A stretch of DNA of 64,000 nucleotides, taken from assembly GCA_965285935.1 (NCBI GenBank), contig OZ260664.1, positions 25,730,001-25,794,000 of the forward strand. Direction: 5' to 3'. This document shows positions 19,202 to 62,503 of the stretch, piece after piece. The notes beneath the pieces are model-generated. The model searched no databases. It was given only the letters and a program-made list of their open reading frames with translations, and was not told where the DNA came from. Position numbers and translations under genes: made by a program. Within the stretch, counting starts at the first letter, position 1. Every line of letters starts with the position of its first letter. Origin of the DNA: Ophelia neglecta (taxonomy: Eukaryota).

Positions 19202-19596
19202 GTGAGTCGCCTAGCCGAGTCTTCTTAAAACTATCTTAATGTTGGCGGAACTCATCTGCTGCTCAATATTAATAATAATGATACATTGGACTACTTGTAC
19301 TGTTACTGGTGTTTTTCTCCGTTTGGTCGCAGTTTAAAACTAATGATAAACGCGGTATTATGACATCTTTAGTAGCCCATTTTGAAGAGCAGCGTGATAA
19401 ATTTATAGAAAAAAAATACTTATTGTCGCAATGAGACTGATTATCGGTGGGTTGTGATAATTTTCCAATGGGACTCAGGTTTGATAGTCAGCAGTCATGT
19501 ACACTTTATGATTTCTAATTAAGCCTTTTTCACTTTGGTAAGTTTCCGAAACGAAAAAATATGAACAGGTGAAATACTTGGGAGTTCTGTTGCTTA

Positions 19597-26400: not shown

Positions 26401-26765
26401 GCAAAAATTCGCGGAATCTCGCTAGATTTGTAGCAATACAAAGATGAAAGCGAACGGTTTAATATGGGATTGGCCTGTAACAATATAGCTATAGGCTTGT
26501 AGGAATAAATTTCAGCAGGAATACCGCAGAAAGTCTTGGGGTATATTGTGTCACATTTAGTTGCAAAAAGTACACGAGGATGAGAAGAGTTCATCGAGGA
26601 CCTATTGACCTGCATTACCTAAATGTAATATTCTGCCATTTCTGTTATAGATGGAGAAAAAAAAATGCTCATTCGGTTTAGAAACCCCATTAAAATTGAA
26701 TTATTTAAGCTTGTGGATGTTTTAGGTAGTTTTCTACTCAAAGAACGACCTACTTGATATTGCAG

Positions 26766-26833
26766 GGCCCGCCACGGTGGTAGACGTCAATCTTAATATC
26801 AGGAGTATGGGTCCAATCTCTGAGATAGACATG
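26766..26833 (+). CDS. Grd: Grd coding exon 3 (GPATVVDVNLNIRSMGPISEIDM)
   Basis: tgcag| acceptor and |gtgagt donor; 68-nt exon with the SMGPISEIDM motif typical of GABA-A-family genes. Too short for the ORF track. Confidence 0.92.
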
Positions 26834-27900
26834 GTGAGTAAAATGCCCCATTCATGACAGCTTCTTGCATGTAAACTGTGTCATAAGGAAGATTTATGAA
26901 AGCTTTGACAGTTTGTTTCTAGAATGTATAATTTCCCATTTTCCTAGAAAATTAAGGATAAATTGCTGTCGGTGATTCTCGTCAATAAAATGTCAAACTA
27001 TAGGTAGTGGCTGCTCTAGTTTTCTGTGACTGCAAAATGCGGAAATTACTCCTATAAAGCCTATGGTCGAACGGGTAAGGGAGAACAACAGCAAATTTTA
27101 TCAGCGTCATATTGGTCTTCATGAAAAACTATGCCGAGGGTTACACGTCATAATTATGTAGGCCTTAATATGCCTAGTGTAATAGTAACTCCTGGGGCTT
27201 TTCAATACTCTTACATGACAAACCAACTTATCATTATTTTGCATAAATCTTATGTTTTTCTTTACTTTATCGCCAGATGTATCAACGCATTGTAAATGAT
27301 ACCCGTTTTTGTGAGATGTAAATAGGCAGTTCCACATTTCCTCGTGATAACTGGTATCGCACTCATGTTTATCTAACTTAAATATTTATTTATGTCTAAT
27401 CAACGTGCAGCTATTATAAATTTTCTTACATGAGTATAGGAGTAAGTTAAGTTAGTAATTTATCTTCTAAAAATACCACCCATTGCCGTTTTTCGACAAA
27501 CCGTTCCATCATGGACGACTAGAAATTTGTCTAGAATGACAGCTATGGTGTTGTCTTACGATTAGATGGAGCTCGGTTTTACTTTTCCATTTAATCATGA
27601 AATTACTCTGGATGAAGCTTAGTTCTATTTTATGGAGAATCCACTGATTAAAAAGCTAACTCCATAACGCGACTGTGGAATGAAGACTTTTCGAATTATC
27701 ATTTTATTGTCATTAATCAATTGATTAATCACGCTGCTGTAGGCTTAATGCATTAATTTTTTGTCATTCTACCCCAATTTAGTGATTTAATAAATGAGAT
27801 ATATTAAATACGATTCAGCCACGTCTATGACAAAATGAACTGCACAAGATATTCTCCGTTATGTCATGGTCATCAACCAAGTCGATCATCATCGAACTAA

Positions 27901-29155: not shown

Positions 29156-29379
29156 GCTTACCAGATGGATTGCTATTTCCGGCAAAGCTGGGTCGACAAG
29201 CGTCTGGGGTTTTCCGGAAGTCCCATGAAGACTATGCCGGTCAGTATCAGCATATTGGACCGAATCTGGAAGCCGGACACCCATTTTTTCAACGGTCGAA
29301 ATTCCTACTTGCACACAGTTACATCGCCGAACAAACTGCTGCGCATCAATCGAGATGGCCGAATTCTGTACTCCATGAG
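29156..29379 (+). CDS. Grd: Grd coding exon 4 (AYQMDCYFRQSW...WKPDTHFFNG...ILYSMR; loops D, A, E)
   Basis: ctacag| acceptor, AG|gtaaca donor; matches ORF 29129..29383. Confidence 0.95.
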
Positions 29380-32300: not shown

Positions 32301-34784
32301 GATGACAATGTTTTAGGATAGCGCCATCTGGCGAGAAACGGAAGACCGCGCTGCATGCTGGGATACTTTGGTAGGTTAGAAAATTTGACTGTCATTATCA
32401 CCTGCAGCCACCCTCTTTGGTCGCTGTCTTTAATAATACCAAAACAAAATAATAACATATCATTAATCAATGCTTATATTTAATTGCGTCTGTTTACGAT
32501 GTGGAGATAAAACGAACAAAATGCTGCCTGGCTTAAGTTTTTGGCTTAGAAATAATCAAGTAAACAAAACGAAACCCAAGGATATAGTCCCACTGTGTAG
32601 AAAAATGTATCGACATGGTAAATATCTGTATCCAACTTCTGTCTCCAAACGTGTCGATCGTGAAATAGTACGACAGGCACGTTCAAAAGGCCAATTACTA
32701 TATCAGGGTGGCCCGGCCCTGCCAGTCAATTTACGTTCTCCTCTTTCTACCGGGCCTTAAACGGCGGCTTTAATTAAATTCGGTGAAAAGGCAGTTAATC
32801 CCTGGGTCTGGCCCCGGATATCCCATCCCTGAAATCGCAGTCCGTGTCAAAAGTTCATTGTCTTCACCATCGCTCTTATAGCGTTGCAGACTAATTACGT
32901 TATATCCTTGCTTGGAGTTTCCTTATTTACTGTCGGAGTCGACAATACCTTGCTCTGTGGGTCTGCTACCTTGAATACAGCACTGAAGAAAGTGCTTCAA
33001 TCGCTGCTGAGGGGCCACAAAACTAATATAGGAAGTCCTCCAGCAGAGGTAAAGCGGTTACAAACAGCCATCGGATTCATTATTTTGGTGAACAGTATAC
33101 TTGTCTCTTAATGTTCGCCTCTATTTTTCTTCCTGCATGGTGCTCTCATGCTTTTTATGAAAAACACCCACTGTACTCTATCATATATTGCCTTACAATG
33201 TTAAGACAAGGAAAAATGATGTTGACCAGGGGAACTTTCCCCATGCAACGTGTAAAACGAGAACATGAAGATCATTTGTACAAGTAGGTGCTATTCCAGG
33301 TGGATGTTTACTAGGAACAACTCGTTAATATTATTTCACGATTAAACTACAGTTTATATACGTAACGTAAAAAGGAAAAAATAACGAAGCATCAATGTAT
33401 TTAGATATATAAATTTGGTATCATTAGAAGCCGTTCTGGTCGTCCGCCAATTTATTACACGACTTCAACCGTCTCCTCTTACAGACATAGTAATGAGTAA
33501 TGTCCCACAAGATGGTTTTCTGCTTGTCACTAGAATGTTGTTTTTCTGTTAATGCTGAATTTAGGCATTGAGGTAGTTCTTTCATCTTCTTCACACTGGA
33601 CACTTAACTGTCAACAAATCACCTTTATTGTTTGCCAGCGTCACTTGCCAGGCTTCTTATATGAGATGTGTACCAAATCTAGGAAACATGTTTTACCTGG
33701 TTCACTTTCAAACGTATATGCATCATTTAAAATGATAGCTTTGGATACAGAATTACATGCCTCAAAGAAGAAAGGAACAAATAAAACAATTTTTTTAAAT
33801 ATTTCTCAAATGACTCAAAAATTGCAATAAATGAACATTTTGGATCTACCCGCCTCAAGCGATCATTTTATTGCAAGATTTTATCTCAAAATTAATTAAT
33901 ACAGCAGGGTAGCTCATTCAAGATTTTGAATGTTTTGGTCAATTAATCAACTGCTTAATTGATTTAATCAACATCCATCATTAAACACAGGATCTGTTAA
34001 CAATATGAAAAAGGAAACGCCCATCTAAATTACCTTGTTAAAATTTGAGAAACAACATTCATTATTATTGGACCCAGCTGTAAAGGTTTATAAAAAGAAC
34101 CCAAGCATTCTAACTAGGTCGCCGAGGGACTCTCCAATTCTTACTACTCCGTTGTTCTTTGAGTATAGAATATAGCCATTTAACTGATTATACCCTCTGA
34201 GCTTACTGGCTTTTCTCTATAATTCATATCCACGGAGTTAAAATATTCACAAATATAACAATCCAAGGCAATCCCATTAGATTTACCTCAAAACCCCAAA
34301 AACTAATCTTATGAAAAGAAGGCCAATACTTCAGAGATCTAATTCAGTAAAGGCTATAGGTTTACGTCTGTTTCCTATCCCTTTTATCGATCTTGATAGG
34401 TCTATCTCAGCCACTTAAACTATTTCATTCTGTCGCTAACTCCGACTCGGCAGAAATGGGCTGGGACACTAAATCTACCGAGTCTGTGTTTGGCGGTGAT
34501 ACTCACCTATATCAAATTGTGCCCTCTCACATTCTTTTGAGCGAGCTGAGAAATCGAGTCTGCGGATAAGGCTCTGCGAATTAGTTTCACTGCTGAATGA
34601 CCTCTTGGTCATCAAAAGCATGCAATAGCTGCTCTCAAAGAATGTGTTGTGTCAACAAGGCGTGTGTAATCAATCGACGTCTCAATCGATTACAACGATC
34701 GTATACCCGTTTAATGCAATAAGGACCTGAATAGGATCGTAGGTTACAAGAAGTCTAATTGAGTTGCTCATTTGATCATTTCAG

Positions 34785-34867
34785 GTTGACAATAAAGGCA
34801 AGCTGTCCGATGCATCTTGAGTCGTTTCCAATGGACACGCAGTCTTGTCCACTCCGCTTTGGCAGTC
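34785..34867 (+). CDS. Grd: Grd coding exon 5: Cys-loop ([28 protein letters not shown])
   Basis: tttcag| acceptor, C|gtgagt donor; 83-nt exon carrying the C-x13-C signature. Confidence 0.95.
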
Positions 34868-37800
34868 GTGAGTATGAAATACCATGAATGCCAGAAATAT
34901 ATATTGAATGAAAATTGCCATTGTTTAAATATCCTAAGGCCGTTATGCTGTTACGCACAAAACACGTTTAGTCAATGCACAGTGTTCTTTGCTGTAGAAG
35001 GCCCTGCCAAATAAGAAAGGTATTAAATAATATGTATTCTGTGGCTTAATACCTTAGGAATAGTGTTGCATGCCGTTTAATTTGAAATTATCCCATTCCG
35101 ATACTTGTGAATCGATACCAAAATGAGACGAGTAGATTTACAGGGGAGTAGATCTATCGAAAGTTTTTAAAGACCCTTGCTTTAGAGAAGTTAGTATTTC
35201 AATGGAATAGATCTATATACCGTTTGAATTGATTGATATGATTTTGACCAGTCTGATGTTTGAACGATATACTGATACCAATATTTACGATCCCATACAT
35301 TGGTTTTAAATATTCATTCATACCTAAGTGTGTCTTGTAAAGCCATGTTCGCATTTCATTTGTTCATCCTATTCCAAAATGCCGCTAAAATGATGATGAA
35401 TTCAAGGGAAAATTTTGCCATGTACACAATCTATAATATTTTTTCATCAAGTGTTTCAAACCAAACAGTCACGCTTTTTTGTGACTGAACACACATGCAA
35501 CACAAGTTGTTATATCAGTAACAAGAAGATCCACTTGGCCCCTAGCCATATGATGAGCGGAATATCTATCTCCATCACCGGTAGGGCACCAACTGAGTAA
35601 TGATTTGTTACTCAGATTATGGCCGACGCCAAATCCACTCCTTATTTGTAAGCAGACGTTTATCATTATTTGTAGACCAGGTATAATTGCAGTTGTAAGC
35701 TAAAAGTTGGAGAATACTATTCAGATAAATGTGCCATAGGGGCAAAAGTTATCAAAACGCATTCCGTGTTATCTGCACATGGAAGTCTGTCGCGATATCG
35801 GAGTAACAAAAAGCAAAATCTGAGTAACACAGTCCCTTAATTAATAAGTGCAAGAATAAAAATTGTGGATTCCGATTTAAATAAGGGACTGTCTAGTTCA
35901 AACTACGCAGCCATTGGGATACTTGATATAGCTTACGCTTAACGAGATCTTGCGTCTATACGGGTTGATTAATCTAGCAGCGACATTTGGGAAATATGCC
36001 TAATGTAACTCAGATCCTGCCTTTTGTGTTACCGATGAATTCTGACATACATTTACACCCTGAAAAAAAACCGAGTAAATTTCTATTCATTCTGCCAGAG
36101 TGTCACTATTATCTATACAGTATTGCAATAGCTATAAGCAAACAACAGTAACCATATTTGCTGTGAAAATAATGATTAAATCCTACTTCCCAATAGGAAT
36201 GGACTAGGCGTCAGCCATTTTTTCATATGAGTAACAAATAGTTAGTCAGACGTGTCTTACAAGTGCTCCAAGCACATCTTATGACGGCAGTATTTGTCAA
36301 CTATTTGTCACCAATATGTTTCTTTAAAAAAAACTCTCATAACATTTAAGATGAAACCTTACGTCAACTGACACCTACTGATCTACAATTCATTTTATAG
36401 TCACTCCAAGCAGCCTTAAGTATTTCGTCAGATTCTCAGATAGTTGCTTAATATTGAGGTTTTTCTTCTGCTTTTTGTGTCTGGGAGAGAATATTGGGAA
36501 CAGAATCGACATGTTTCACATCTCCAAAATAGCTGTCTCAGAGTTATGAAACATGCTGGTTGAAGGTTTTCTACTGTCTGAACATGTGTTTGCAATGTCA
36601 ACTTGGTCTTGAAGTCTATTAATATACCAAGAACTGATAAAATTGCCGCAACAGTTTTTGTTATAACTGATTTTCCTGTTCTGAACACCAGGTCCCAGCT
36701 TGCAGTCTCAACATTACTTCAAATATTCATAGTCATGTACCTTTCCTTTTTTCATAAATTGCCTACTGTCCTCTGTGTAGGCGTTGATGTCCAAACTAGG
36801 CCTTGTCTTAGTGTGCTTGGTGTTCGCAGACGAAAATCTGGGCTGGTGTCTGCGCTTTTTGGGCCCATCTGTACCTACTCCACTGTGAAATAGTTACTAG
36901 TTACAATGACACAATTAACAGGCTTGCACATCACTTTCAGATTATACTAGACAAATATATTAAACACATAAGACACCTAGAGAGATAAACACAATGATGG
37001 ATATACTCGCATTTAGAAAGACATGTGTCATCACCCAGACCAGCTTTTATTATAGATTAAATAAACTACAAAACAAAACATGGCTAATTGGTGTTAACCA
37101 ACATTACACACTTTATGAATGCCCATTTCAACGGCCACTGAATAATATGCCATTACGTTAAATTGAAGTCTAATTTGCACATTAGTTATCCGCTCAAGTG
37201 CCTCCCAGGTTAACTGAGTTTAGAAAGAGACAACATTCATTTATCATCAAATTACAAATTGCCTCTGCCTTAAGACTTACACATTGGTAGATACTTTCGA
37301 GAGTAAAGAACTCAACTTTTTGTGCAATCGTGGTAAATGTTGGACTCTAATTTGCATAGAGGGGTTGAAAGAATTGTTATCCATTAAGGATAATTGGGAT
37401 AGGCCATTTTGATGAAATATATACTCCATGAAGACATTACCCCTGCTTGTAGTTTTCATAATGAACAACCGGGTGATAACACTGATGAATGAGGGTGCGA
37501 AAAAAGAGCTCCGATTCCATTGACTTACGAGATTACCTGGGACTCTATATCAATGTTATTTTAAAGTTGACAGTGCCTCACAACATGCGTAAGTAAAACT
37601 GGTTCTAGTTACCGATTTCAAATCCACTTATTCCCATATAAACAGAAAGCGAGAAGACCTGTTTTCGACGATAGTATCCTAGTGTTCGTAAGAATAGTCC
37701 ACATACCGTACTCAGGTAGGGGAGGATTCACCTTTCGTTCTTTGAAAACTGGCTCGTTTTTATGGCTAAGCCTACTACATGGAAAAATGTTGAAGAAATC

Positions 37801-40800: not shown

Positions 40801-41103
40801 TTAAAGGTTTGCTTTGACAGCACATTGCTTCATATAGAATGCCATCGGCAGCATTTATATTTGAGGAAAAAAGACAACCTCATTCAGAAAAATGGGCCCC
40901 AAAAACAAATAATAAAAATTGGCGAAAATACGGGGGATTGGTCAGATGTTGGGCCTACACCAGAGGGATGGGGAGTTGCGAATTGCGAGGATCCCCCGGC
41001 TAGTGCGCACGGTTAGGCAGGCCTGGTCTTTTGCTTTTAGCCCCCTCCCCCCCCCCCCCCCAAGTTTTTTTTTCTTTCCTTATATCTATTCTGTGATTTT
41101 CAG

Positions 41104-41244
41104 ACGGATACGGAGTGAACGATGTACTGTACATTTGGACATATGGTGATCAAAGCTCGATAAAGATGGCGTCTGACATGACCTTGTCCCAGTTTGACTT
41201 GATAGGTATCCCTGCCGGAAATGAATCCAGCGAAAAGGCTGGAG
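41104..41244 (+). CDS. Grd: Grd coding exon 6 (HGYGVNDVLYIWTYGDQSSIKMASDMTLSQFDLIGIPAGNESSEKAG)
   Basis: ttttcag| acceptor, G|gtagga donor, phase 1-1; LSQFDL motif. Confidence 0.92.
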
Positions 41245-41452
41245 GTAGGAAACATAGCTACATCAAGATATTGTTGCACTTCTCTGATAAATAAGAAGCA
41301 CCAAACAATGGTTTTTATTCAGAACCTCAAATTATGAATTTTTGTAAAATTCAGCACCTGTTTTTTGCTAGTTAAACAAGACACTCCATTACATACACAC
41401 TTACCCTTGTTAATGTCCATTTTATATATATCGCTTGAGATATTCTTTTCAG

Positions 41453-41611
41453 CGGGCCAGATTTACTCAACGTTATTTGCAAGTTTTATACTAAGAAGAC
41501 ACATGGGGTACTTCCTGATCAATGTCTATGTGCCTTCCAGTCTGCTGGTGGTCATCTCTTGGGTGGGCTTCTGGATCAACCGGGAGGCCACAGCTGACAG
41601 AATAGCTCTGG
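41453..41611 (+). CDS. Grd: Grd coding exon 7: loop C end, TM1 and TM2 up to 4' (AGQIYSTLFASFILRRHMGYFLINVYVPSSLLVVISWVGFWINREATADRIALG); last shared exon
   Basis: ttcttttcag| acceptor, G|gtgagt donor; matches ORF 41365..41640. Confidence 0.95.
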
Positions 41612-46399: not shown

Positions 46400-46632
46400 G
46401 AGTAACCACCGTTCTCACAATGGCTTTTCTGGGCATTGACAACAGAAGAGACTTGCCAAAAGTGCCCTACTCCACTGCTTTGGACTACTTTGTTGGCGCT
46501 TGTTTTGCGTTTGTTCTTGCTAGCATACTTCAGTTCGCCAGCGTTCATTTCTTCACAAAACATGGCAGCGGGGAAGTTTTTCTTGTGTCACCGGAAACAA
46601 CTGACGATGAATGTGAAGACGAGGCTGATAGA
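46400..46632 (+). CDS. Grd: Grd exon 8A: TM2 (T6'), TM2-3 loop and TM3
   Basis: tttttctttag| acceptor, AGA|gtaagt donor, 233 nt, phase 1-0; GVTTVLTMAFLGIDNRRDLPKVPYSTALDYF. Confidence 0.95.
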
Positions 46633-47372: not shown

Positions 47373-47753
47373 GAGCGCAAGATATTGATGGAAAGACGCA
47401 GCACGATGCCTATGGCGTCCACATCTTCTTTCAAAAACAGAGTCAGCAAAATGAACGGAGAAAGGACAAAAGTGGGCAGTATCTCGTCTACACAGTATAG
47501 AATGAGGCACGATTACAATATAAAACATCGAGCTTCTTTTTTATCGCAATTGTGGAACTGCTTGAAAGGAAGCTCAAAATATCGTGATTTCAAGTTGTTA
47601 GTGAGTTTTGATGGACTTAATAGTGTTAGTAACATCGATCAGGTAGCAAGGATTCTATTTCCTATAGCATTCTTAACGTTTAACGTTTTCTACTGGTTCA
47701 CCTATTTAGGTAGTTTAGATAGGGAGTCTCTCTCCTCCTTACTTAGTAGATAG
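47373..47753 (+). CDS. Grd: Grd exon 9A: intracellular loop, TM4 and stop
   Basis: taattatag| acceptor, phase 0; ERKILMERRS...NSVSNIDQVARILFPIAFLTFNVFYWFTYL...TAG. Confidence 0.93.
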   Translation, partial: ERKILMERRSTMPMASTSSFKNRVSKMNGERTKVGSISSTQYRMRHDYNIKHRASFLSQLWNCLKGSSKYRDFKLLVSFDGLNSVSNIDQVARILFPIAFLTFNVFYWFTYLGSLDRESLSSLLSR

Positions 47754-48356
47754 TTGTCGACGACTTAAGAAAATGAACATCAGAAACAATTCTAGTCCTC
47801 CATCAGAATGGGATGGTACTTGGGCGTAGGTGGCCTGCCTCCCCCGTCCATCATACTTGTAATAAATGTGATTGTGTACAAACAATTGCCCAATTTGATA
47901 AGGATCTTGCGGGGTGTGTGGAAAGGAGTAGTAGCACTTGACCCTATGCTTGGGCTTTACCAAATGATTTTAATGCGAGAGGAAGCCATCGTCTTAAAAA
48001 AATTGTGTGGGAGTTATTTGCAAGCTAGAATGGGATACTATAGCAAAGTAGGCATATTAAGAATAACAATAGTATAGAAACATTGCTAGTTTGATTAAGA
48101 TGTTGGGTCATTGTAATAAGTAAAAGTAAACACTCTAGACATAATCGGTTTTTTGTAACTTGATTAAATATGTAATGCACTTTAGCACTTTAGCTAATAA
48201 CCCCATGCACTCGCCGTCATCTCAATCTGTGCTTAATAATGTGTCTTAATAACTGTGTTTTCATAGTGACCATGCATCTTTCCATATCCTTCAGGTATGT
48301 AGCTGGTGAATAATATGTGGCCCCTATATTCACATGCATTCGAATGTTACTATTGA

Positions 48357-48362
48357 AATAAA
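48357..48362 (+). terminator. Candidate polyadenylation signal for isoform A (another AATAAA at 47861)
   Basis: AATAAA about 600 nt after the A stop. Motif only; common in AT-rich DNA. Confidence 0.3.
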
Positions 48363-48418
48363 ATACATGTATACGTCATCGAATTTTCATTATTTGTATA
48401 ATGACTTGCTTAGTGCAT

Positions 48419-48475
48419 CTTGACTTGGGGTAACTATATTTTGACTTGGGGGCAACTCCAGTTTGACTTGGGGCA
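48419..48475. repeat. Three copies of ttgacttgggg at about 21-bp spacing
   Basis: Seen directly; resembles a MITE subterminal array. Confidence 0.55.
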
Positions 48476-50765
48476 TGAACGGAAAGAGACTAGTCAGCTT
48501 AGTTGCCCACTTATAAGCAGGTCATTAATATTAATCGCAATTAAACTGGTACCCTTCACATTTGCACCGGCAGATGTCGCTGGTGCCAATGTATCCGGAC
48601 CAATGAGAGCCCTCAGGACAAATTAGGTTATAAAAAAGCGCAAAAAAAGACTACTTGGATAAGTCACCTCTGTCAGCACTAGGTAACTAGACCAAATTAA
48701 CAGCGATGTTTAAAAAATGTCTCAATATGATATCCAAATTCAAATTGCTTAGTGAATCACCGAATTAGTTCGTTTGTGACGAGATTTTAAAACAGTGCCA
48801 TGGGCTCCGGGCATAAATGCTTAAAATCAATGAAGTTTATTGGATGTACAAGTATCCGATATGCCAAATCTGATTTCTCGATTGGGGTTATCTAGTAAGT
48901 TAAGACAGGCCACGTTCCTTTGATTCTGTTAAGAGATCTTTTGGTGTATAAGTGTTTATATTGGTCATATATATATGGTGGACGACATTGAGTGTTTTAT
49001 TCTTCTAATCAAGAAGGAAATAAAGTGGATTCACGTACGCTATTTCAGTGGAGATTTTAATTTTGATAGCCATATCCAAAATTCAAATATATACAATTAA
49101 CCATGATAATCCCCAACAAAATAGTACGGTTCTAACAGCAAAAGTTATAACGAACTAAAATAATAACAGTCAAAGATAAACGAACAATGGGCACTGGGTG
49201 TCAAAGGTGTTACCCCCAAATTGATGATAAGGGCTATTGATCTGAGAACTAGGCTATTTGCAGCAATCCGTTAAATTGGCCTGTTAAAGGCAAATTTCTT
49301 TATTACCTGATATGTGAAGAAAAGAAAGTTTCTCATATAGTTTCTTTGATAGTTTTGTTTTGCTAAGCAGAATTTGACTGAACGTACTATGATTGAATTA
49401 TTGATCAGTTTGGTGGATACATTGGATAATTGACTCTAAATGTCCCCGGTCAACAGCGTTTCCCTGGGATGCCACGAAATCCTTCTATCAGAGTTATAAA
49501 TTTGTGTGTATAGCTTATCATATTATACAAATTTATTTGCATGTGTAGTTGAATAAGATTCAATATAAGTTCCGTTGTTATTTCTAATGTTTACTATGTA
49601 TCGTAGCTCGTCTTCGCCTCCGACTCAAGTTCTTTTATTGGCACGCTACACTAATATAGTATTTTTAAACAGCCGTGATAACATGGTTGTCGTTACCTTG
49701 GGCGTAGGATACACACTGACTTAACCAAGATACCCTATTGGTTGTGTTCAAACCGGTTATTTCTTAATAGAAAAAAATACAACGCAACGTTATATATACA
49801 ATTATGATGTGCATATAAATTTGGTAAGACATAAGAATTGCAAACTTAGAAACAGAAAAAGCTGCAAAACTAATACAAATGATAATAAAAAAAAAATTCA
49901 TAATGGCGCACTGGCAATATGTGGCAAAAGTATTAAAACACTTTTTTTAAAGAGATGTGAATCGTAAAAACAAATGACGTCTTCTTCTCAAACCAAAACC
50001 ATCTTTAGGAAAAATAAATAATGTCGTACACACACAAACACACCAAATCAGCCCTCGCCCTCGCCTTCCTCCTCTCAGCCATGAAAATAACTGCCCCTTA
50101 AAGAATTATATGAAGAAATCTATAAATCTATACATAAAGACAAATGATACGCAAAGTTCACTGAGAAAAGATTGTCTTTGACTAGCTAAATAATGTGCCA
50201 TGCGAGCTGGTTCGAAACTGAATTTTCAATTGCCACATTTACTAGAAAACTATTGTTTTATGCCAATCCATACGACTCAACATTTAATTGAGGATAAAAT
50301 ATGGTGGGACATTTGTAACAAATTTTAAAGTTTGGGACACGTTTCGTCAATAATTTCAATTTTGGATCGCTTCATATATATGCACTTGAGTTAGTCAGTA
50401 ACCACTCTTGTTATTCAACCTCCCCTTGAATATTGACTCACAATCACGGGTCTACGATGTGCTTACATAGATACTGCGACTTCAAAGCAGACCGGGGAAG
50501 CTTCATTGTAGTTTCAGTAAAGACGCCGTATGCAAACCATCCAAATGGGCATAGACACCTGTTAGACAAACAGTATGTTAAGTATTGGTGAAGTAACTCA
50601 TAGTCCACCGTATTGTTTGTATGGTAAAACGGAAGTTTAGGTATGTGCCCATAGAAATGTTTGTTGATCCGCCTGACTCTATATGTAATAAGTTTCTCGT
50701 AGTATTTTAATATTGGTAAGCAAATGTTCGAAATATGAAAGGTTCCACCTTTTATGTATGGTGAA

Positions 50766-50977
50766 TGTCATATAATACTTACCAGGTTATAATATATATA
50801 CTTGCCCTGTACTCCCCTGGGCTGGTGACGTCGCGGTGTCGGATGTCACGTGGGGACGCTCTAGTGTGTGAGCAAGCCGTTAGCCATTCTAGTGACCACC
50901 GGTGATTTGTACCTATCCGAGTTACATGAAAATAAACTCTATTGTTACCTGCCAATGGGCTATCGATCTTCATTACA
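50766..50977 (+). repeat. Outer element 5' LTR
   Basis: Direct repeat of 60212-60423; TG...CA ends; AATAAA at 50931. Confidence 0.97.
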
Positions 50978-50990
50978 TGGTGTCAGAAGT
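50978..50990 (+). promoter_or_regulatory. Primer binding site TGGTGTCAGAAGT (tRNA-Leu type)
   Basis: Immediately follows the 5' LTR; complementary to a tRNA-Leu 3' end ...ACTTCTGACACCA (recalled). Confidence 0.85.
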
Positions 50991-51124
50991 AATCAGGAAC
51001 ATTGTGATCGGATATTTCTTAGTGTGGAGGATCAATCGTACCGGAATTCAGTGTGACTTTGTGACCGCTGTGTTTTTGTGTGTGTGTGTGTGTGTAGCCT
51101 ATACTAGCACACATAACCTACAGG

Positions 51125-52089
51125 ATGGCATTCAAGGCACCAACACCAGACACCTTCAACTTCGTGAAACCGGAGACATGGCCGGAATGGAGGGACAGAT
51201 TCAAGAGATTCAGGACAGCCGCGAAACTGCATAAGGAGGAAGGACACATACAGGTTTCTCAATTAATTTACTGTATGGGGTCACAGGCAGAAACTATATT
51301 TATGACATTCCAATTTGAAGAAGAAGCCCATAAGACTAATTTTGACCAAGTTTTGACTAAGTTTGACAACCATTTTGTCCCCCGCAGAATCCAAATGAAT
51401 GAAAGGGCTAGATTTTTTGCTGAAAATCAGAAACCGGAGGAGAACATTGAAACTTTTGTTAGGCGTCTGTATGAACTTTCTGAATCTTGTGACTTCCCAG
51501 ATAGGGATAACACTATTCGTGACAAGTTAGTTTTAGGAATGACTGACAAGGAGACATCACAGAGATTACAAATGGATGATGATCTTGACCTTAATAAGGC
51601 CCTCACCACGGCAAAGCAGGCGGAATTAGTAAAAACGCAGATGAGGGAGCTACAAAAATTGCAGATAAATTCAGATGTAAATGAAATTAAGAAAAAGAGT
51701 CGACATTTTGGGAAGAGAGACAGTGCTCAGGGAAGAGACAGTGCCCAATATAGACGAAGACCACAGGGTCAACAGGAAGTTGATCATTGTGGGAGATGTG
51801 GCACAAGTCATCAGAGGGGAAAATGCCCAGCCAAAGGTAGGAAATGTTACGGCTGTGGAAATTTCAATCATTTCAAATCCCAATGTAAGTCGAGATCACA
51901 AGGTCAAAGGAGAAGGCTACATGAAGTCACAGAAAATTTACCAGCCAGTGTAACTAACCCTGAGCAGCAGAGCTATGTGCCGGAAGAATTTTTCATTGGT
52001 GACCTGACTCATACAGGAGACAAGGAGCCATGGTATGTTTTACTGGAAGTCTGTAAGACCACAATCAAATTCAAAATTGACTCAGGGGC
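51125..52089 (+). CDS. gag: Outer element gag plus N-terminal part of protease, interrupted at DSG-A
   Basis: ORF 51125..52213 is Gag-like with two zinc knuckles and FKIDSG; residues after 52089 derive from the inner LTR. Confidence 0.9.
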
Positions 52090-52284
52090 TGTCACGATAG
52101 TCCGCATTTTGGTTCATCCGTCTTTTGTAGTGCGCACAGTCATGTTCCGACTTTTGTATCAGTCCCCTGGTGGTTCCGGTTTGTCACTTCCGCCCAAGCT
52201 AAAATACAAATAAACATCTCATAAAATGTTATGAGTTTTATCGTCTCACATCGAAGACTTATTCAACAGAGACTAAACGTTACA
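52090..52284 (+). repeat. Inner element 5' LTR
   Basis: Identical by eye to 56824-57018. Confidence 0.97.
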
Positions 52285-52324
52285 TGGTGTCAGAAGCTGG
52301 AGAAAACTTCATAGATTCTTCAGG

Positions 52325-55300
52325 ATGGCAGTTGCAATCAATCAAAGTGTTCCATTCCCGGAAAAACTCAATTTAACAGGAGACCTGAAAGGTCAGTGGG
52401 AGTATTTTATACAGTCATACAAGAACTATGAGATAGCTTCACGTGTAAAGGAACAACCCATGGAGGTAAGGGTTTCTACTCTGCTGTCATGCTTCGGGAA
52501 GGAGGCATTTAAAGTTTTCAATGCCCTAACATTTGAGGATCCAAACCACAAGAAACAATTTGACAAAATTGTGGATAAAATGGAACTGTATTGTGTGGGA
52601 GAATCCAACGTTATTTATGAGAGATACATCTTCAATCAGCTCACTCAGAAGGGGGAAAGTTTCGATGCATTTCTGACAGAACTGAAAAATCAAGCACAGA
52701 AATGCACTTATGGAACCCTTGAGAATGAACTGATTCGAGACAGAATTGTAGTTGGTGTGAAAGATGATTCTCTTAGAAAGAGACTTCTACAGGAGAAAGC
52801 ACTCACACTAAACCAATCTGTTACAATGGCTAGGGCCTATGAGCAAACATCACAACGACTTCGGGACATGAAGGCTACAGATCAGCAGGTAGATGCTATC
52901 TCAAATAAATCTACAATTAATAACTGTAAATTCTGTGCTGGCTCCCACCTTCCCAGCAGAGAAGCATGCCCAGCATGGCAGAAAGTATGTGCTAACTGTG
53001 GCGTTAAAAACCACTTTAGTAAGTGTTGTAGGCAAGGTAAAGCACACAAAGCACAAATTTCACAGGCTGCCCCCCAGCCAAGAAAATCCACACCCAAGAG
53101 GAAATCCAAATCTGGCCGGCCCATACGTGCACTCGACGAGGAGCTGGAACAGGACATTCTGCACCTCACTGTTGCTTCCCTCAGCAGTCAGTCACAGGTC
53201 AGGGCTGAAATGAAAATACAGAACAGTGCTATAAAATTTACCCTGGACACCGGAGCTTCTGCCAACGTTTTATCACAGAAACAGTACTTTCAAGTAGGCG
53301 GTAGGATGGCTGATCTTGAGCCTTCCTCCATCCTGTTAACTACATACACTGGGGAAAATTTCAAACCTATTGGACAGAAGGTACTTACCGTCACAAATCC
53401 ACAAAATGAGCAGAATTACCGTGTGAGATTCCAGGTAGTAGCCGCTAACCTCAAACCTATACTCGGATCCAGAGCTTGTCAGGCTATGAACTTAGTAACT
53501 TTTAATGTACAAAACATCCAACAAATCAATGAACCTACTGATCCTTTGGTGCGCTTCAAGGACGTGTTTGAAGGTGAGGGATGTCTTCCAGGTCAAGTCT
53601 CACTTACCGTAGATCCCTCTGTCGCGCCATCTCGCCAGCCTCCCCGTAGGGTCCCCATTGCCTTACGTGATCCTGTCAAAGCTGAGATTGACCGTCTGGT
53701 TGACCTCGGTATCATCGAACCAGTTACAGAACCTACTGACTGGGTGTCTGCTATGCTAATTGTCAAGAAGAAAAATGGGAACCTTAGGATCTGCATAGAT
53801 CCACGACCACTGAATGTTGCTTTGAAGAGGAGTCATTATCCATTTCCTCCTGTGGACGAGTTGATGTCTGACTTGAGAAAAGCTAGGGTGTTCACTGTCG
53901 TCGACGCCAAGAACGGTTTTTGGCATGTCAAACTAGACGAGGAGTCTAGCAGGTTGACAACTTTTACCACACCTTGGGGTCGATTTAAGTGGACAAGACT
54001 TTGTTTCGGAATATCGGTCGCCCCCGAACTTTTTCAGAGAAAAATGCACGAGGCCACCGAGGGTCTCTCTGGAGTTCGAGTCATACACGATGACACTATC
54101 ATATGGGGCGAGGGAGACTATGATGACGAGGCTCTCCGCGACCATGAAAAAAATCTAACTGCCTTTCTCGCTCGATGTCAGGAGAGGGGAATCAAGCTGA
54201 ATAAATCTAAGATGGTACTCAGAAGCCCTCAGGTCAAATTCATGGGCCACATTTGGTCCAAATCAGGAGTCTCACCAGACCCATCAATCATCGAAGCCAT
54301 CACCAAGATGCCTCCTCCTACCGACAAGAGCGGTGTACTTCGTCTGTTAGGAATGGTGAAGTACGTTCAGAAGTTTCTGCCAAACTTATCAGCAATTACA
54401 GCTGATATCAGAGAACTTTTACAAGATGACGTTCAGTTTGTTTGGGACAGTGCAGTGCAGGGACAGGCATTTAAAAAAATCAAACAGATCCTGACCAGTG
54501 TACCTGTACTGAAATACTTCAATCCAGAGAAAGAAATTCGACTTCAATGTGATGCCTCAGAGAAGGGCCTGGGAGCAACCTTGCTCCAGGATAATCACCC
54601 AGTGGCATTTGCCTCACGCGCCCTCTCCAAGGCCGAGGTAAATTATGCCCAGATTGAGAAGGAACTCTTAGCTATCGTCTTCGCATGCGAGAGATTTGAA
54701 CCCTTCATTTATGGTCTGCCAGTATCGGTGGAGACAGACCACAAACCCCTCGAGATCATCGCGAGGAAATCTCTTATCACGGCTCCCAAACGCCTCCAAC
54801 GCATGTTACTTCGCCTCCAGAAATACCAGTTGAACATTCAATACAAGAAAGGAGAAGATATGCTCCTAGCTGATCCACTGAGCTGAGCCTATCTCAAGTA
54901 CGATCAGCGTACACCATGTCAAAATGACGACATTTTGTCACTTGAAATAGCTTCAATCCAAATGAAAGACTTTCTCGCCATGTCTGAAGCTAGAATTGAG
55001 TCAGTGAAACAGGAAACGAAGGCTGACCCTGACCTCACATTTCTCACACATGTTGTACTTCAAGGGTGGCCGGACTCGTCGGCAAACTTACCCGAGGAGA
55101 TCAAACCATACTTCCAATTTCGCGAGGAGCTCTCATATCAGGATGGGCTTCTATTCAAAGGAGAGAGACTGATTATTCCAAAGTCGGCTAGGCATGACAT
55201 AATTGCCACTCTCCACGAGGCTCATCAAGGGATACAAGCTGCTCTTAGAAGGGCACGTGAGGTCGTGTACTGGCCAGGTATGCACTCAGACTTGGAAAAT

Positions 55301-56365
55301 CACTTCAAATTGTGCTCTACTTGCTGTTCTATGAACACAGCTCAGCAGAAAGAGCAAATGATCCCTCATGAAATCCCCTCCAGACCTTGGCAAAAGGTTG
55401 GTGTGGACATTTTTGATGCCAAAAACCAGTCTTATCTCGTCTGTACAGATTACTACTCGGACTTTTTTGAGATCGACAATCTGGCAGGTTCTAAAACTGC
55501 ACAAGCTGTGATCAAGAAACTCAAGGCACATTTTGCCAGACACGGCATTCCTTCAGAGGTAGTATCAGATAATGCCCCCTTCGATTCTAGAGAATTCCAT
55601 GAATTCTCCGAAAGATATGATTTCAAGCACACTACCTCATCGCCGCATTATCCTGTCTCCAATGGAAAGGCCGAGAATGCAGTAAAGCAGGCCAAATCTA
55701 TTATTCTCAAGGCCGAGGATCCATATCTAGCCTTGCTTGCCCTCCGTAATACCCCTACGGAAAATATCACTTTGTCACCTGCACAGCGCCTGTTTGGAAG
55801 GAGGACCAGGACAACGTTGCCGACCAAGGCAAATCTGTTGAATCCACTCCAGTCTGCTAGTCTGTCTGTTCCAGGAAAACTGGCAGAAAGGAAGAACAAA
55901 CAGTCGTTCTACTACAATCTCCATGCTAAGGATCTCCCACCACTCAGTCCCGGAGATGTGGTGAGAGTAAAGCCTTACGGGTCAAATAAACTGTGGAAGA
56001 AAGCAATTGTCAATTCACAAGTTGACATTCGCTCATATCAGGTCACTACAGAAGACGGTGCAGTGTATCGTCGTAATCGCAATCATCTGCGATCATCGCC
56101 TGGAGAGAATTTCCAACCAGCACCCTCTCACGACCTAATAAATGAGCCACCGTCCAGTGCTCTCCCACAGCTGGCACCACCCCCGATGTCACCAGTGCCA
56201 GTCGACCAACCCGCAACTAGCACTCCACCCCAGTCTGAGAGTGCACCTGCACCTACACTTCAGCAGACAGAGTCACCTAAATTGGGCAATAACAAACTGC
56301 CCCTTCGTACAAAATCTGGCCGAGCTGTCAGGAGGAATTTCGACCCTAACTTCGTATATCAATAA
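52325..56365 (+). pseudogene. gag-pol: Inner element gag-pol single frame, broken by one in-frame TGA at 54884-54886
   Basis: ORFs 52325..54886 (Gag, LDTGA protease, RT IHDD, RNase H) and 54935..56365 (integrase) share a frame. The stop replaces the conserved Arg of AD.LSR, probably CGA>TGA. Confidence 0.9.
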
Positions 56366-56823
56366 GTTTGCATAATTCATAACTCTGTATAATGTTTAGG
56401 TAAAATTTTAAGTATTAAAATAGTTGACGTTTGGTCTAGAAAGACATTTAAGCCATGCTACCTTGCAGCCATACAGCTGAAGACATTTAATTTTTCCATA
56501 TTAACTTTCAAAGACACTGAAATAGACTGTCAGATATATATTTGAATGTTTATTGAGAAAGCAGTTATAGTGCATGATTTAAAGACACTCGAAGGACTTT
56601 TAATTTAAGCCAAAGTTAATTCAGTAACAGTTCTTGGTATTTGAACAAGTTTAGCATTAATTAGTATAAGGTGTTTTACAATTCATCTTTGTATACTCTA
56701 AAATTTTTAAAGGTTCTAGATTCAAACCTATATGTTTTAAGTACAGGCTATCTACAGTGTTTGATATTGATTGTTAAACATATAATTAGTATGTATCTTT
56801 AAATGTCTTCTGAGAAGGGAGGA

Positions 56824-57018
56824 TGTCACGATAGTCCGCATTTTGGTTCATCCGTCTTTTGTAGTGCGCACAGTCATGTTCCGACTTTTGTATCAGTCCC
56901 CTGGTGGTTCCGGTTTGTCACTTCCGCCCAAGCTAAAATACAAATAAACATCTCATAAAATGTTATGAGTTTTATCGTCTCACATCGAAGACTTATTCAA
57001 CAGAGACTAAACGTTACA
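56824..57018 (+). repeat. Inner element 3' LTR
   Basis: Identical by eye to 52090-52284. Confidence 0.97.
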
Positions 57019-57023
57019 GGGGC

Positions 57024-60018
57024 TGATGTTAATTTAATATCCAATGACATGTATGAGAAAATGGAAGAACCACCCACCTTAACCCATAGTGACAATGAAC
57101 TACGAGGCCCAGGAAATAGTATTCAATGTGCTGGATACTTTATAACAGAAGTAGTTCACAAAGGAGAGAAATACCCATTTAAAGTCTATGTAAGTCCTGC
57201 AGTCAGTTCATCCTTGCTGAGTAGAGAATCAGCTGTGCGTATGGGTATGATTATCAGAGTGGAAGAAATAGTGGCAGAATACAGTGACTGTTATGGAAGC
57301 AGTGGACTTGTTAAATGCACTCCTGCTAAAATTAAACTAAAGGATGGGGCAGTGCCTTACAGTATACCTTGTCCATACAGAGTACCATTTCCATTACTGA
57401 AAGAGGTGAAGGTAGAACTGGATAGGATGATCAAAGATGACATTATAGAGGAGGTCAGTGAGCCTACTGAGTGGTGTGCATCAATGGTACCGGTGCTAAA
57501 GAAATCTGGACAGGTTCGAATTTGTGTGGATCTCAGGAAATTAAATACAGCTGTTGAGCGGGAAAAACTTATCATGCCAACATTAGAAGATATCAGTCCA
57601 AAGCTTGCCGGCTCAACTATATTTTCTACTCTCGATGCCAGCTGTGGGTTTTGGCAAATTCCACTTGAGGAGGCTAGCTCTCGCCTCACAACTTTTATTA
57701 CACCTTTTGGCAGATTTTGTTTTAAGAGAGTTCCATTTGGGCTCAGCTCAAGTCCAGAAATTTTCCAAAAGAAGATGGGAGAAATTTTTGATAATCTAGA
57801 AGGTGTGGAAGTTATCATGGATGATGTGCTAATCCATGGAGCTGGTGAACAAGACCATGATAGACATTATAGTGCAGCAATGCAGCGCGTTCGAGAATTA
57901 GGCCTCAAGTTGAACGCCAAGAAATGTCGGTATAAGAGAACTGAAATTCCATATTTTGGTCACGTTATGACTGAAAATGGAGTCAAAGCCGATCCGGTGA
58001 AGGTGGAAGCTATTATGAAACTCGATCCACCGAGGGATGTCGGCGAGTTAAGGCGTGTCCTGGGAATGGGTGCCGCTTTGCTAAATTTTATGGAAGGAGC
58101 GGCAACAGAACTAGCACCTCTGACAGATTTGCTACAGCAAGACAAAGGATGGCATTGGGGAGCGGATCAACAAAGGGCGTTTAACAGATTCAAGCACCTT
58201 GTTACAAATGCTCCAGTTTTAGCTTTTTATAGTCATGACAGGGAAACTGTGGTCACAGCTGATGCGAGCAGCTATGGACTCGGGGCTTCTATTCTTCAGG
58301 TCCATGGGGATCAGCTGAAACCTATAGCTTTTGCCTCAAAGAAGTTATCCCCAGCAGAGAAAATCTACGCGCAAATAGAGAAGGAACTTTTGGCAAGCGT
58401 GTGGGCATGTGAAAAGTTTGAGAGGTATCTAGTTGGTCTTCAGTCCTTCAGACTACAGACTGACCATAAGCCGTTGATTCCACTTATAAACAAACAGGAC
58501 CTCAACAAAGCACCGCTACGTTGTCAGAGATTTTTAATGCGTTTGATGCGCTACAATCCAGTCGCAGAATATGTACCAGGAAAGGACCTGGTCATAGCAG
58601 ATACCCTATCAAGAAGCCCGACTGGAAGTGAGAAAGAAACCAGCGTGTTGGAAAGTGACACACATCTGTACGTGCACAGTGTCATTTCTACCAAGCCTAT
58701 CACAGGTGAATGGATGTCTAAGCTGAGAAAGGAAACAGATAGTGATGCTGTAATGAAACTAGTAATTCAGATAACAAAAGCAGGGTGGCCAGAGAACTAC
58801 GGTGAAATAAAGGAATCACTGAAGCCTTATTTTGCGGCTAGAAACAGTTTGTCAACAGCAGAAGGACTGCTTATATTTGAGAACAGAATAGTGGTTCCAA
58901 AGGTATTGAGAGCAGAACTTTTGAGAAAACTACATGAGGGACATCAAGGCATCACCAAGTGTGGAGAGAGAGCAAAAACTAGTGTGTGGTGGCCTACAAT
59001 TAACAAAGATATTGCAGAGACTGTGGCTAGCTGTGAGTTTTGCCAAACTCATAGGGCAGCCCAGCGAAAGGAGCCTTTGATTCCAAGCAAATTGCCAGGA
59101 CGACCAACCCAGAAAGTGGCTGCAGATTTATGTGAATACAATGGGAAAAACTATCTGGTTGTTATCGACTACTATTCTAGGGACATAGAATTTCCCTATA
59201 TGGCCAACATCACGAGCACAAATCTGATAAGCAAATTCAAATATATCTTTGCTCGCTGGGGCTATCCGGAGGAATTATTCACGGATAATGGTGGACAGTT
59301 CACTTCTATTGAGTTCGAAAATTTTTGTGATTTATATGGTATTAGACATGTGACCTCGAGTCCGCATTTTCCCCAGTCAAATGGAATGGCGGAGCGTGGA
59401 GTTCAGGAGGTAAAGAAAATACTGAGCCAGCCAGATCCCTTACATGCATGGCTCGTATATCGCACAACACCAGGACCACTGGGGTGGAGCCCTAGTCAGC
59501 TCAACATGGGACGTCAGCTGAATAACACTCTACCAACGCTGCAGCGCAACTTAGCACCAAAATGGCCGAGTAGGCAAGCTGTTCAGCGTGCAGACAAACG
59601 ATATAACTTCACATATAAACAGTCGTATGATCGTCGCCATGGAGTGAGAATACTCCCAAGTGTCAAACCCGGAAACATGGTCAGAGTCCGAATAGACTCT
59701 GATAAAGTTTGGTCCAACCCTGTACCAATAACATCAACTCACAGCACACCCAGATCATTCGTGGTACAAACACCACAAGGAGGTGAGCTGCGGAGAAATA
59801 GGCGCCATCTACAAATGCTTCCAATTCCAAAACCTGGAGAGCCGCCACCATTGCCGCCATTACCTGTACCAAACCCACCTACGACTCAAACGGTTGCTAC
59901 ACATGACACCGGTGGAACATCACCGCAGCACCCGTCAGGTTTGGTCGGTCCAATACCAGGTACTCCAGTTGTAACCAAAAGTGGACGCGTAGTCAGACCG
60001 CCACTGAGATATCAATGA
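57024..60018 (+). CDS. pol: Outer element remainder of pol (PR C-part, RT, RNase H, integrase)
   Basis: RICVDLR, IMDD, ADASSYGLG, TDHKPL, integrase HHCC and D,D,E region, C-terminal TKSGR. Joining 51125-52089 to 57024-60018 gives one 3960-nt open frame (1319 aa). Confidence 0.93.
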
Positions 60019-60211
60019 CAGTTAATTTATATAAAGTGTATTTTAAAATTGGTGTAATTTCTATTTTTAAATGGCAGTGAAACATTACGGACTTCTGGTG
60101 TATCTGAAACAGAGACATTTGTAAATTCATTTTAAAGTAAATCATTTAAGTAAGGTTCAAAGATATTGGACATTTTAAAGTTTAATTTGTTTAAATACTT
60201 GGAAAGGAGGA

Positions 60212-60423
60212 TGTCATATAATACTTACCAGGTTATAATATATATACTTGCCCTGTACTCCCCTGGGCTGGTGACGTCGCGGTGTCGGATGTCACGTGGG
60301 GACGCTCTAGTGTGTGAGCAAGCCGTTAGCCATTCTAGTGACCACCGGTGATTTGTACCTATCCGAGTTACATGAAAATAAACCCTATTGTTACCTGCCA
60401 ATGGGCTATCGATCTTCATTACA
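60212..60423 (+). repeat. Outer element 3' LTR
   Basis: Direct repeat of 50766-50977, preceded by PPT and followed by TSD GTGAA. Confidence 0.97.
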
Positions 60424-60430
60424 GTGAATA

Positions 60431-60586
60431 CAGTGGAACCCCTGATGAAAGACCACCTAAAAATGGTCAAAATAGCCTTTTTTGCAAAACGGTTTGCTAA
60501 ACCGGCCATATATTGCAACCCCTGATGAAAGACCATCCCTCTTATAAGAGCACTTATTAGGTGGCCTCTCATGAGGGGTTCCGCTG
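60431..60586. mobile_element. 156-bp MITE, Tc1/mariner (pogo/Tigger-like)
   Basis: TIR CAGTGGAACCCCTGATGAAAGACCACC / GGTGGCCTCTCATGAGGGGTTCCGCTG with TA on both sides; internal extra copy of cccctgatgaaagacca. Confidence 0.85.
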
Positions 60587-60737
60587 TAGCTGTAATGTGG
60601 CCAAGTTATTATTGTAAATATTGCATGTTGTGGAATGACTACATTAATGAAAAACGTTCAAGGAAAATAAATAAGCACATAGGCCTAAATGATAATTAAG
60701 TGTGATATGATTTCAATGTATTTTACATCTTTTGAAG

Positions 60738-60970
60738 GTGTTATGACCGTCCTTACGATGGCTTTTCTTGGCATTGAAAACAGGAGAGACTTGCCAAAAG
60801 TGGCATACTCCACTGCTTTGGATTACTTTGTTGGAGCTTGCTTTGCCTTCGTTCTTGCTACGATCCTTCAGTTCGCCGGCGTGCATTTCTTTACCAAACA
60901 TGGCAGTGGGGAAGTGTTTCTTGTTTCTCCAGAAACGACCGATGATGAGGATGAAGATGAGGCGGATAGG
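60738..60970 (+). CDS. Grd: Grd exon 8B: alternative TM2 (M6'), TM2-3 loop and TM3
   Basis: catcttttgaag| acceptor, AGG|gtaaaa donor; same 233-nt length and phases as exon 8A; GVMTVLTMAFLGIENRRDLPKVAYSTALDYF. Confidence 0.92.
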
Positions 60971-61647
60971 GTAAAATGAGCATTACCATACGCACACTAA
61001 GACAAAATAACAGGAAGAATTCCATAACAGATTTATTAGAAAACAAACACATTTGTCTTTAAATACCTTTTAGACTAAATTAATAAAGTCTGGTTCCTTA
61101 CAAAATTCATGAATGAAATTGGTTGAGTCCTTCTGGCTAATAACCATAGCCTCCCTACATCTATTTCTGCACCACTGGTCTACAAGGAAGAATGCATGTC
61201 ATTTGCTGGATTTCTGTCTTGGCCTAGAATTTATTAGTATGCCTATGGTTGCATTCACACCGGTGTTGCGGTGCAGTAATTAACGCATTTTTGCCGAAAC
61301 GACTTGTGATTTTGCTTTTAAACAGATTATATTAGGCTTTAGGCACTAAAACTCAAAAGACGATGCATTTGCAAATATGTCGATTGTAAAGAAACTGATG
61401 TCAGAATTTAATCGAATTTCCTCAACAAATACCTTTCTGGTGCCTTTAGGCCTATAACTGTTTTATTGCTTTTACGTATTGCAATCACTTTTGAACATGT
61501 TTTGTTCCTATTTCGTAAATAAATTTACTAAGCATTGTGCTCGCGATCCAAATGTGCATAAGTATACTTTATCGTCTTGCTGAGTTAATTTCTTCATATG
61601 TAACCCATTTTTTCATTATACCATTAACTGTTTTATTCCTTACATAG

Positions 61648-62052
61648 GAACGCAAAATCCTTATGGAGCGTCGAAGTAGGATAGCAACTCCTTCTGCCGT
61701 TACTCCTCCACCTACTCCTCTGCCGGGAAATCTGAACGGAGCCATTGCCCTGCTGGCCTGTCGGACCACCACAATGGCGCGCAGAATGAGTTCCCGTTCA
61801 GCCAGGCAATACGAAATGAGTATGATGGACAATGTCAGATCAAGTGATAACTGCTGGTCTAGGTTTTGGAATTGTCTGAGAGGAAACACCAACTATCGGA
61901 ATATGAAATTGCTGGCAAGCCATGGAGGACTGAACAGTGTCAGCGTGGTTGATCGGTTAGCGAGGGTCATGTTTCCTGTATCTTTTGTGGTTTTCAATGT
62001 GCTCTACTGGGCGGTATATCTGGAAGGCCAGTCGCTTGTCACCATGTTGTAA
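61648..62052 (+). CDS. Grd: Grd exon 9B: alternative intracellular loop, TM4 and stop
   Basis: ttccttacatag| acceptor, phase 0; ERKILMERRS...NSVSVVDRLARVMFPVSFVVFNVLYWAVYL...TAA. Confidence 0.92.
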   Translation, partial: ERKILMERRSRIATPSAVTPPPTPLPGNLNGAIALLACRTTTMARRMSSRSARQYEMSMMDNVRSSDNCWSRFWNCLRGNTNYRNMKLLASHGGLNSVSVVDRLARVMFPVSFVVFNVLYWAVYLEGQSLVTML

Positions 62053-62481: not shown

Positions 62482-62503
62482 AATAAATTGCTTTTACAAT
62501 AAA
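62482..62503 (+). terminator. Candidate polyadenylation signals for isoform B
   Basis: Two AATAAA at 62482 and 62498, followed by T-rich sequence, about 430 nt after the B stop. Confidence 0.35.

Follow-up and report, generated by a model that had tools for sequence, protein, structure and literature searches.

Two homologous exons, here called A and B, lie in the 64,000-nucleotide stretch of Ophelia neglecta DNA that we analysed (the window), and each encodes part of the pore helix M2 followed by M3 of a receptor channel. An earlier note on this DNA had described them as alternative cassettes that exchange Thr for Met at pore residue 6'. The question raised by the locus is whether A and B are alternatives within one receptor gene and, if they are, what a choice between them would change in the channel.

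Anatomy of the gene

The features of the locus are collected in Table 1; individual exons, rather than a joined spliced protein, were the unit of all searches, of the family scans and of the tree. The ligand-binding domain (LBD) is encoded by one set of exons. Pfam PF02931 (Neur_chan_LBD) matches two of its coding blocks, with E values of 9e-14 on 29156-29380 and 1e-9 on 34783-34875, and the latter block encodes the Cys-loop as C-x13-C. Pfam PF02932 (Neur_chan_memb) is matched piece by piece further downstream: its positions 1-30 fall on the shared M1 exon and 31-85 on exons A and B, while positions 146-233 (module A) and 209-233 (module B) fall on the terminal exons, where each match alone is under the gathering score. 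With an LBD that carries C-x13-C and a four-helix M1-M4 region, the locus encodes a Cys-loop ligand-gated channel.

Table 1 Features of the receptor locus and of the spacer between its two 3' modules, in window positions.
Feature	Position	Strand	Description and basis
LBD exons, one set	19042-41282	+	tblastn with Lingula, Haliotis, Ridgeia and Paralvinella proteins; Pfam Neur_chan_LBD
LBD coding blocks, ends approximate	19042-19206, 26756-26845, 29156-29380, 34783-34875, 41100-41282	+	tblastn
Shared M1 exon (M1 and M2 up to 4')	41453-41611	+	ends ...REATADRIAL plus first base of Gly4' codon; donor GTGAGT at 41612; direct reading
Exon A (M2 from 4', M3, loop start)	46400-46632	+	233 nt; strong polypyrimidine acceptor, GTAAGT donor
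T6' codon of exon A	46405-46407		ACC
D17' codon of exon A	46438-46440		GAC
Module A terminal exon (M3-M4 loop, M4, TAG stop)	47373-47753	+	phase 0; motif scan, tblastn, Pfam Neur_chan_memb
Candidate poly(A) signal AATAAA, module A	47861-47866	+	about 110 nt past the stop; motif match only
Ty3/gypsy-type retroelements, two sets of ORFs	51125-56365, 56965-60018	+ (the gene's strand)	RVT_1, RNase H, integrase
Exon B (homologue of exon A)	60738-60970	+	233 nt; acceptor tract weaker than that of A, donor GTAAAA
M6' codon of exon B	60743-60745		ATG
E17' codon of exon B	60776-60778		GAA
Module B terminal exon (proline-rich M3-M4 loop, M4, TAA stop)	61648-62052	+	phase 0; motif scan, tblastn, Pfam
Candidate poly(A) signal AATAAA, module B (first past the stop)	62482-62487	+	about 430 nt downstream; motif match only

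The shared M1 exon ends inside M2, and the two possible continuations were read directly. Counting M2 from R0', exon A reads, after its AG, GA followed by GTA ACC ACC GTT CTC (G4' V5' T6' T7' V8' L9'), and exon B reads GT followed by GTT ATG ACC GTC CTT (G V M6' T V L); positions 60738-60760 span G4' to M11' of exon B. From V5' on, the translations read V-T-T-V-L-T-M-A-F-L-G-I-D-N-R-R in A and V-M-T-V-L-T-M-A-F-L-G-I-E-N-R-R in B, and run through M3. The Thr in A and the Met in B named in the earlier note are exact, and the step from ACC to ATG is a change of two bases, as it had claimed. Over their length the exons differ at 37 of 231 nucleotides and at 6 of 77 residues (T6'M, D17'E, P to A, S to T, S to G and C to D), with positions 6' and 17' the only differences within M2.

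The two homologous exons are bounded by AG and GT, run alike from phase 1 to phase 0 and have a common length that is not divisible by three; inclusion of both would shift the frame. These properties would suit a classical mutually exclusive pair, in which A or B is placed before one common downstream exon and the products differ in the 77 cassette residues. Even a splice from exon A to the terminal exon of module B would stay in frame, as both terminal exons are of phase 0. However, each cassette lies about 0.7 kb before its own exon with M4 and a stop, the same pairing is present at locus L001 of a distant species and in Haliotis, and the Haliotis isoforms X1 and X2 remain different through to their C-termini. 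We regard single-exon switching as improbable, and on this point the earlier description does not hold: each M2-M3 exon has a terminal exon of its own, with M4 and stop. The two terminal exons both start E-R-K-I-L-M-E-R-R-S but are only 42% identical overall, and their loop sequences are unrelated. Because every module has its own terminal exon, the differences between the isoforms would extend over the entire M3-M4 loop and M4, and T6'M would be one among many.

In this layout, one 5' coding part stands before two homologous 3' modules in tandem, which have separate stop codons. Tandem duplicates are known in this family, two adjacent Paralvinella gene models among them, and module B could in principle be part of a separate downstream gene with 5' exons or a promoter of its own. 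Against this, 47753-60738 contains no LBD or M1 coding block, only retroelement ORFs, and the gap of about 1.2 kb at L001 is likewise devoid of such a block; tblastn and motif scanning found no LBD exon between the modules or within 10 kb past the window. A separate gene has next to no credence with us. A product begun at exon B would be without LBD and M1, so module B would be useful solely by splicing to the shared exons. The 762-Mb genome holds no other close copies of A or B, the next paralogue being 57% identical.

We conclude that the window probably contains one GRD-like Cys-loop receptor gene of an annelid, with a single LBD/M1 set and two tandem alternative 3' modules. In the proposed scheme, a transcript that leaves the M1 exon at its donor (41612), continues with exon A and closes with the A terminal exon would give a subunit with T6' and D17'. 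For the other form, module A with its stop and poly(A) site would be skipped and position 41611 spliced about 19 kb onward to 60738, which would yield the same extracellular domain and M1 joined to M6', E17', another intracellular loop and another M4. Judged from the sequence, alternative use of both modules in Ophelia neglecta is very likely, and we infer that both mRNAs are made.

The assignment to the GRD branch comes from the residues around M2 and from the nearest relatives. Ala at -2' and Asp at -1' were read directly in the shared M1 exon, and Phe at 13' in both A and B (M11'-A-F13'). A-D at -2'/-1' together with F13' are hallmarks of cation-type GRD (PMC11037462), and A-D in place of P-A serves as a criterion for GRD (PMC11037462, PMC2064938). 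By match names, the named relatives are 'gamma-aminobutyric acid receptor alpha-like' proteins (Lingula, Haliotis, Lineus and others) and a 'Grd-like' protein (Ixodes), and by exon identity the nearest sequences are those of annelids, with Ridgeia first (81% over one LBD exon), followed by Paralvinella, Dimorphilus and Capitella. In fly, bee, mite and louse, GRD/LCCH3 receptors conduct cations when gated by GABA, and picrotoxin and fipronil block them (PMC11037462; PMC2064938). Insect and mite GRD share A-D at -2'/-1' and F13' with the Ophelia neglecta gene, whereas the insect GRD proteins retrieved have T6', unlike the M6' of module B. The splice variation known for GRD concerns loop C, not the pore (PMC2064938). 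The LCCH3/beta-like partner suggested in the earlier note fits the GRD-like identity given by A-D, F13' and the named relatives. The subunit would be expected to pair with an LCCH3-like partner in a heteromer that is gated by GABA and probably permeable to cations, or else the A and B forms may co-assemble as UNC-49B and UNC-49C do.

Constraint on module B

Exons A and B have a dN/dS of 0.04 at a dS of about 1. The introns that flank them cannot be aligned, and similarity ends at the exon borders. The low dN/dS and the unalignable introns speak against chance likeness: the duplication is old, and both of its products are under constraint. This bears out the view of A and B as homologous, constrained alternatives behind one upstream M1 exon.

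A search for sequencing runs found three DNA-like runs of one sample and no RNA run, and DNA contigs of this sample gave a second haplotype across module B. In exon B, all 11 differences from the window are synonymous and the ATG at 6' is unchanged; in the B terminal exon, 9 of 10 are synonymous. Heterozygosity over 60617-62000 is very high, about 5% of exon B sites, and in the coding parts it is confined to synonymous sites save for the one terminal-exon change. Module B retains intact splice sites and two intact reading frames. Exon B is under strong purifying selection.

These observations bear on the possibility that both exons of module B are left over from a partial tandem duplication and unexpressed, in which case the Met codon would be without consequence. 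The module does stand apart from module A, by 13 kb that include retroelements, and its acceptor is the weaker of the two in pyrimidine tract. A relic is nevertheless difficult to reconcile with so low a dN/dS at this dS, with the synonymous nature of 20 out of the 21 changes between haplotypes across both B exons, with the intact splice sites and frames, and with the retention of M6' and E17' at L001, where synonymous sites are saturated. We consider it very improbable.

A duplication introduced by a haplotig or by assembly was also considered and rejected. The dS of about 1, the unalignable introns, the 42% identity of the terminal exons and the presence of the pair in another species all speak against it, as does the separate observation of both haplotypes of B.

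The spacer between the modules is 13 kb long here, as against about 1.2 kb at L001, and the retroelement ORF sets account for this length. As the two retroelements lie in the sense strand, they could hinder read-through to B. Just 5' of exon B, a stretch of about 200 bp (60371-60583), which includes a near-repeat of CCCCTGATGAAAGACCA, reaches word depths in the thousands in the DNA contigs, compared with about 15-45 in its flanks, and probably represents a short interspersed repeat of very high copy number.

Related genes in other species

The same order is found at L001, a locus of a distant species with saturated synonymous sites: an M1 exon is followed by a T6'/D17' module and then by an M6'/E17' module, with terminal exons of their own. 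The M6' of exon B is accordingly kept in a related species, and several fragments from other genomes that were retrieved with exon B also carry Met at 6'. In a tree of terminal exons, the B exons of the window and of L001 form one clade (support 99/95), which places the duplication before the split of the two species. The A exons of the window and of L001 are nearest neighbours without strong support, and deeper nodes are left open.

A comparison of the two M2-M3 exons at L001 (A, 7343-7573; B, 9983-10213) points to selection on the pore. Nucleotides 58-170 are identical between them, and the exons differ at both ends. Within the first 57 nucleotides, which code for M2, they differ at 14 sites, and Thr/Met at 6' and Asp/Glu at 17' are kept. 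The identity of nucleotides 58-170 indicates a gene-conversion tract over M3 that spared the M2 codons. That the M2 differences apparently survived this conversion is the strongest sign of selection on the pore differences themselves.

A comparable arrangement occurs in abalone. Locus L019 of Haliotis rufescens has a single M1 exon, behind which lie first an L6' module that corresponds to isoform X2 and then a T6' module that corresponds to isoform X1; both modules end in a stop of their own, and X2 was placed by tblastn on the X1 locus. The RefSeq models of X1 and X2 are identical up to ...ADRIALG and different from there to the C-terminus. The alpha-like X1/X2 pairs of Haliotis rufescens and Haliotis rubra thus belong to the same subfamily as the Ophelia neglecta gene and share with it the boundary after ...ADRIALG and the two modules, each made of an M2-M3 exon and an M4 terminal exon. 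They differ from it in having Leu rather than Met at 6' and in the reversed order, with the L6' module first and the T6' module second, and they are known as annotation only. In Haliotis asinina, a single model of 744 residues runs through both modules.

Other genes of the family have a single module. In the nemerteans Lineus and Tubulanus, single-module genes that are orthologues (support 98/97) have T6' and M6', respectively, and three further single-module loci (L002, L016 and L003) have M6'. In Ridgeia and Capitella, the loci examined have one module only, with T6', and the two-module arrangement is therefore not general in annelids. Among the full-length relatives retrieved, 97 have Thr at 6', 10 have Met and 8 have Leu, with Met or Leu found in nemertean, bivalve, gastropod, collembolan and amphipod sequences. 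Protein searches, including one seeded from the M6' pore region of Tubulanus, returned no full-length annelid protein with M6'. Far from being private to one haplotype, M6' stands in both haplotypes, in the B module of the distant species and in many protostome GRD-like subunits. On the sequences compared here, M6' appears neither private nor rare in the GRD-like family, and the two-module layout appears patchy.

Several further gene models are of note. Two neighbouring models on one contig of Paralvinella palmiformis (P0208 and P0211) are 100% identical through most of the LBD and M1 and diverge from M2 onward, both with T6'; a tandem duplication of very recent date may lie behind them, or the two models may share exons. 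In the springtails Folsomia candida (X2, P0205) and Orchesella cincta (P0209), the end of M1 and start of M2, R-E-A-T-A-D-R-V-x-L-G, occurs twice per model. The first copy reads on into non-receptor sequence, and the second copy in Orchesella has M6', which suggests springtail GRD genes with duplicated M1/M2 exons. Models of the heterobranch gastropods Aplysia (P0274), Lymnaea (P0276) and Biomphalaria (P0269) have near-identical M4 regions (clade support 100/99) and Thr, Met and Leu at 6', respectively; this variation could reflect rapid turnover or different isoforms sampled by annotation. Outside the GRD branch, a model of 504 residues of the P-A-R (anion) type (P0093) contains three tandem M1-M3 copies with Thr, Leu and Thr at 6', and may likewise have arisen by fusion of alternative pore modules of one gene into a single model.

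Residue 6' and the probable use of two modules

The closest known system is the nematode gene unc-49, whose transcripts join a common N-terminal part to one of three C-terminal copies that lie in tandem (PMC8841521). The picrotoxin IC50 is 0.9 µM for the UNC-49B homomer and 166 µM for the B/C heteromer (PMC8841521), and the resistance of UNC-49C has been attributed to the M6' that replaces Thr, with L6' in Dirofilaria (bioRxiv 10.1101/2025.10.30.685166). The Ophelia neglecta gene resembles unc-49 of C. elegans, Haemonchus contortus and Dirofilaria immitis in its shared N-terminal part, in its tandem C-terminal copies that each have a separate end and in its contrast of T6' with M6' or L6'; the products of the one unc-49 gene co-assemble. 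In unc-49, the shared part comprises the first portion of the extracellular domain only, whereas in the Ophelia neglecta gene it extends through M1 into M2 (4'), and hence the ligand-binding domains of both products would be identical. Furthermore, unc-49 is RDL-like, with P-A-R before M2, while the Ophelia neglecta gene is GRD-like, with A-D-R, and the two are not orthologues. Since the gene belongs to an annelid, a different phylum, its unc-49-like layout is likely of independent origin.

The pharmacology that the earlier note had invoked for residue 6' is real. Met at 6' of rat GABA rho2 lowers picrotoxin block (Zhang 1995, as cited in PMC3174224), and so does Phe at 6' of the glycine receptor beta subunit (PMC6130310). 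In zebrafish glycine receptor beta, a change of 6' alone is without effect on picrotoxin resistance, and residue 17' and M3 residues contribute (PMC6130310). Rat rho2 and glycine receptor beta also have a residue other than Thr at 6', but they are products of separate genes rather than splice alternatives, and they form anion channels. Splicing changes the pore-forming part in the insect nicotinic receptor subunit alpha6, through its alternative exon 8 (M2), and in the nematode glutamate-gated chloride channel gene avr-14, through alternative channel halves. Both belong to other receptor classes, and in alpha6 the choice is truly between mutually exclusive single exons. UNC-49C and rat rho2 offer a sound analogy, on which M6' in the B form may weaken picrotoxin-type pore block, alter gating, or both. 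The further idea in the earlier note, of a switch that protects against dietary or self toxins, finds no support in the present analysis.

The many other differences between the modules leave room for another account, in which both modules are used but the switch serves the intracellular loop and M4, through trafficking, clustering or partner choice, and T6'M is tolerated and pharmacologically minor. The low identity of the terminal exons and their unrelated loops are in keeping with this, as is the insufficiency of 6' alone in zebrafish glycine receptor beta. Moreover, residue 6' flips between Thr, Met and Leu among close orthologues (Lineus and Tubulanus; Aplysia, Lymnaea and Biomphalaria), which suggests loose constraint on the position. 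On the other hand, T6'/M6' and D17'/E17' are kept in two distant species despite gene conversion over M3, the abalone modules differ at 6' too, and the effect of Met is large in unc-49 and rho2. A switch that serves the loop and M4, with little part for the pore, seems to us unlikely on balance, though far from negligible.

Searches of the literature found no papers on pore-changing 3' modules in GRD-like genes of molluscs or annelids; the layout is implicit in the abalone RefSeq isoforms and yet apparently undescribed. We put forward, tentatively and as possible rather than probable, a wider proposal: that lophotrochozoan GRD-type, probably cation-permeable, receptors independently evolved the unc-49 solution. 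One LBD would then be combined with two pores, loops and M4 helices in subunits that are co-assembled or cell-specific and are blocker-resistant or kinetically distinct, the difference at 6' being kept by selection against gene conversion.

For annotation, these genes carry a practical lesson, as gene prediction in the GRD-like family readily yields fused or truncated models; that of 744 residues in Haliotis asinina is an example. If both isoforms are made, the Ophelia neglecta gene would be a second, apparently independent GABA-receptor gene with two pore types and one LBD, and the UNC-49B/C-type switch from T6' to Met or Leu would be present in the little-studied GRD branch, in annelids and molluscs. 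It would offer a natural experiment on the role of residue 6' in a cation-type GABA channel, and it may help explain the odd pharmacology of native invertebrate GABA responses.
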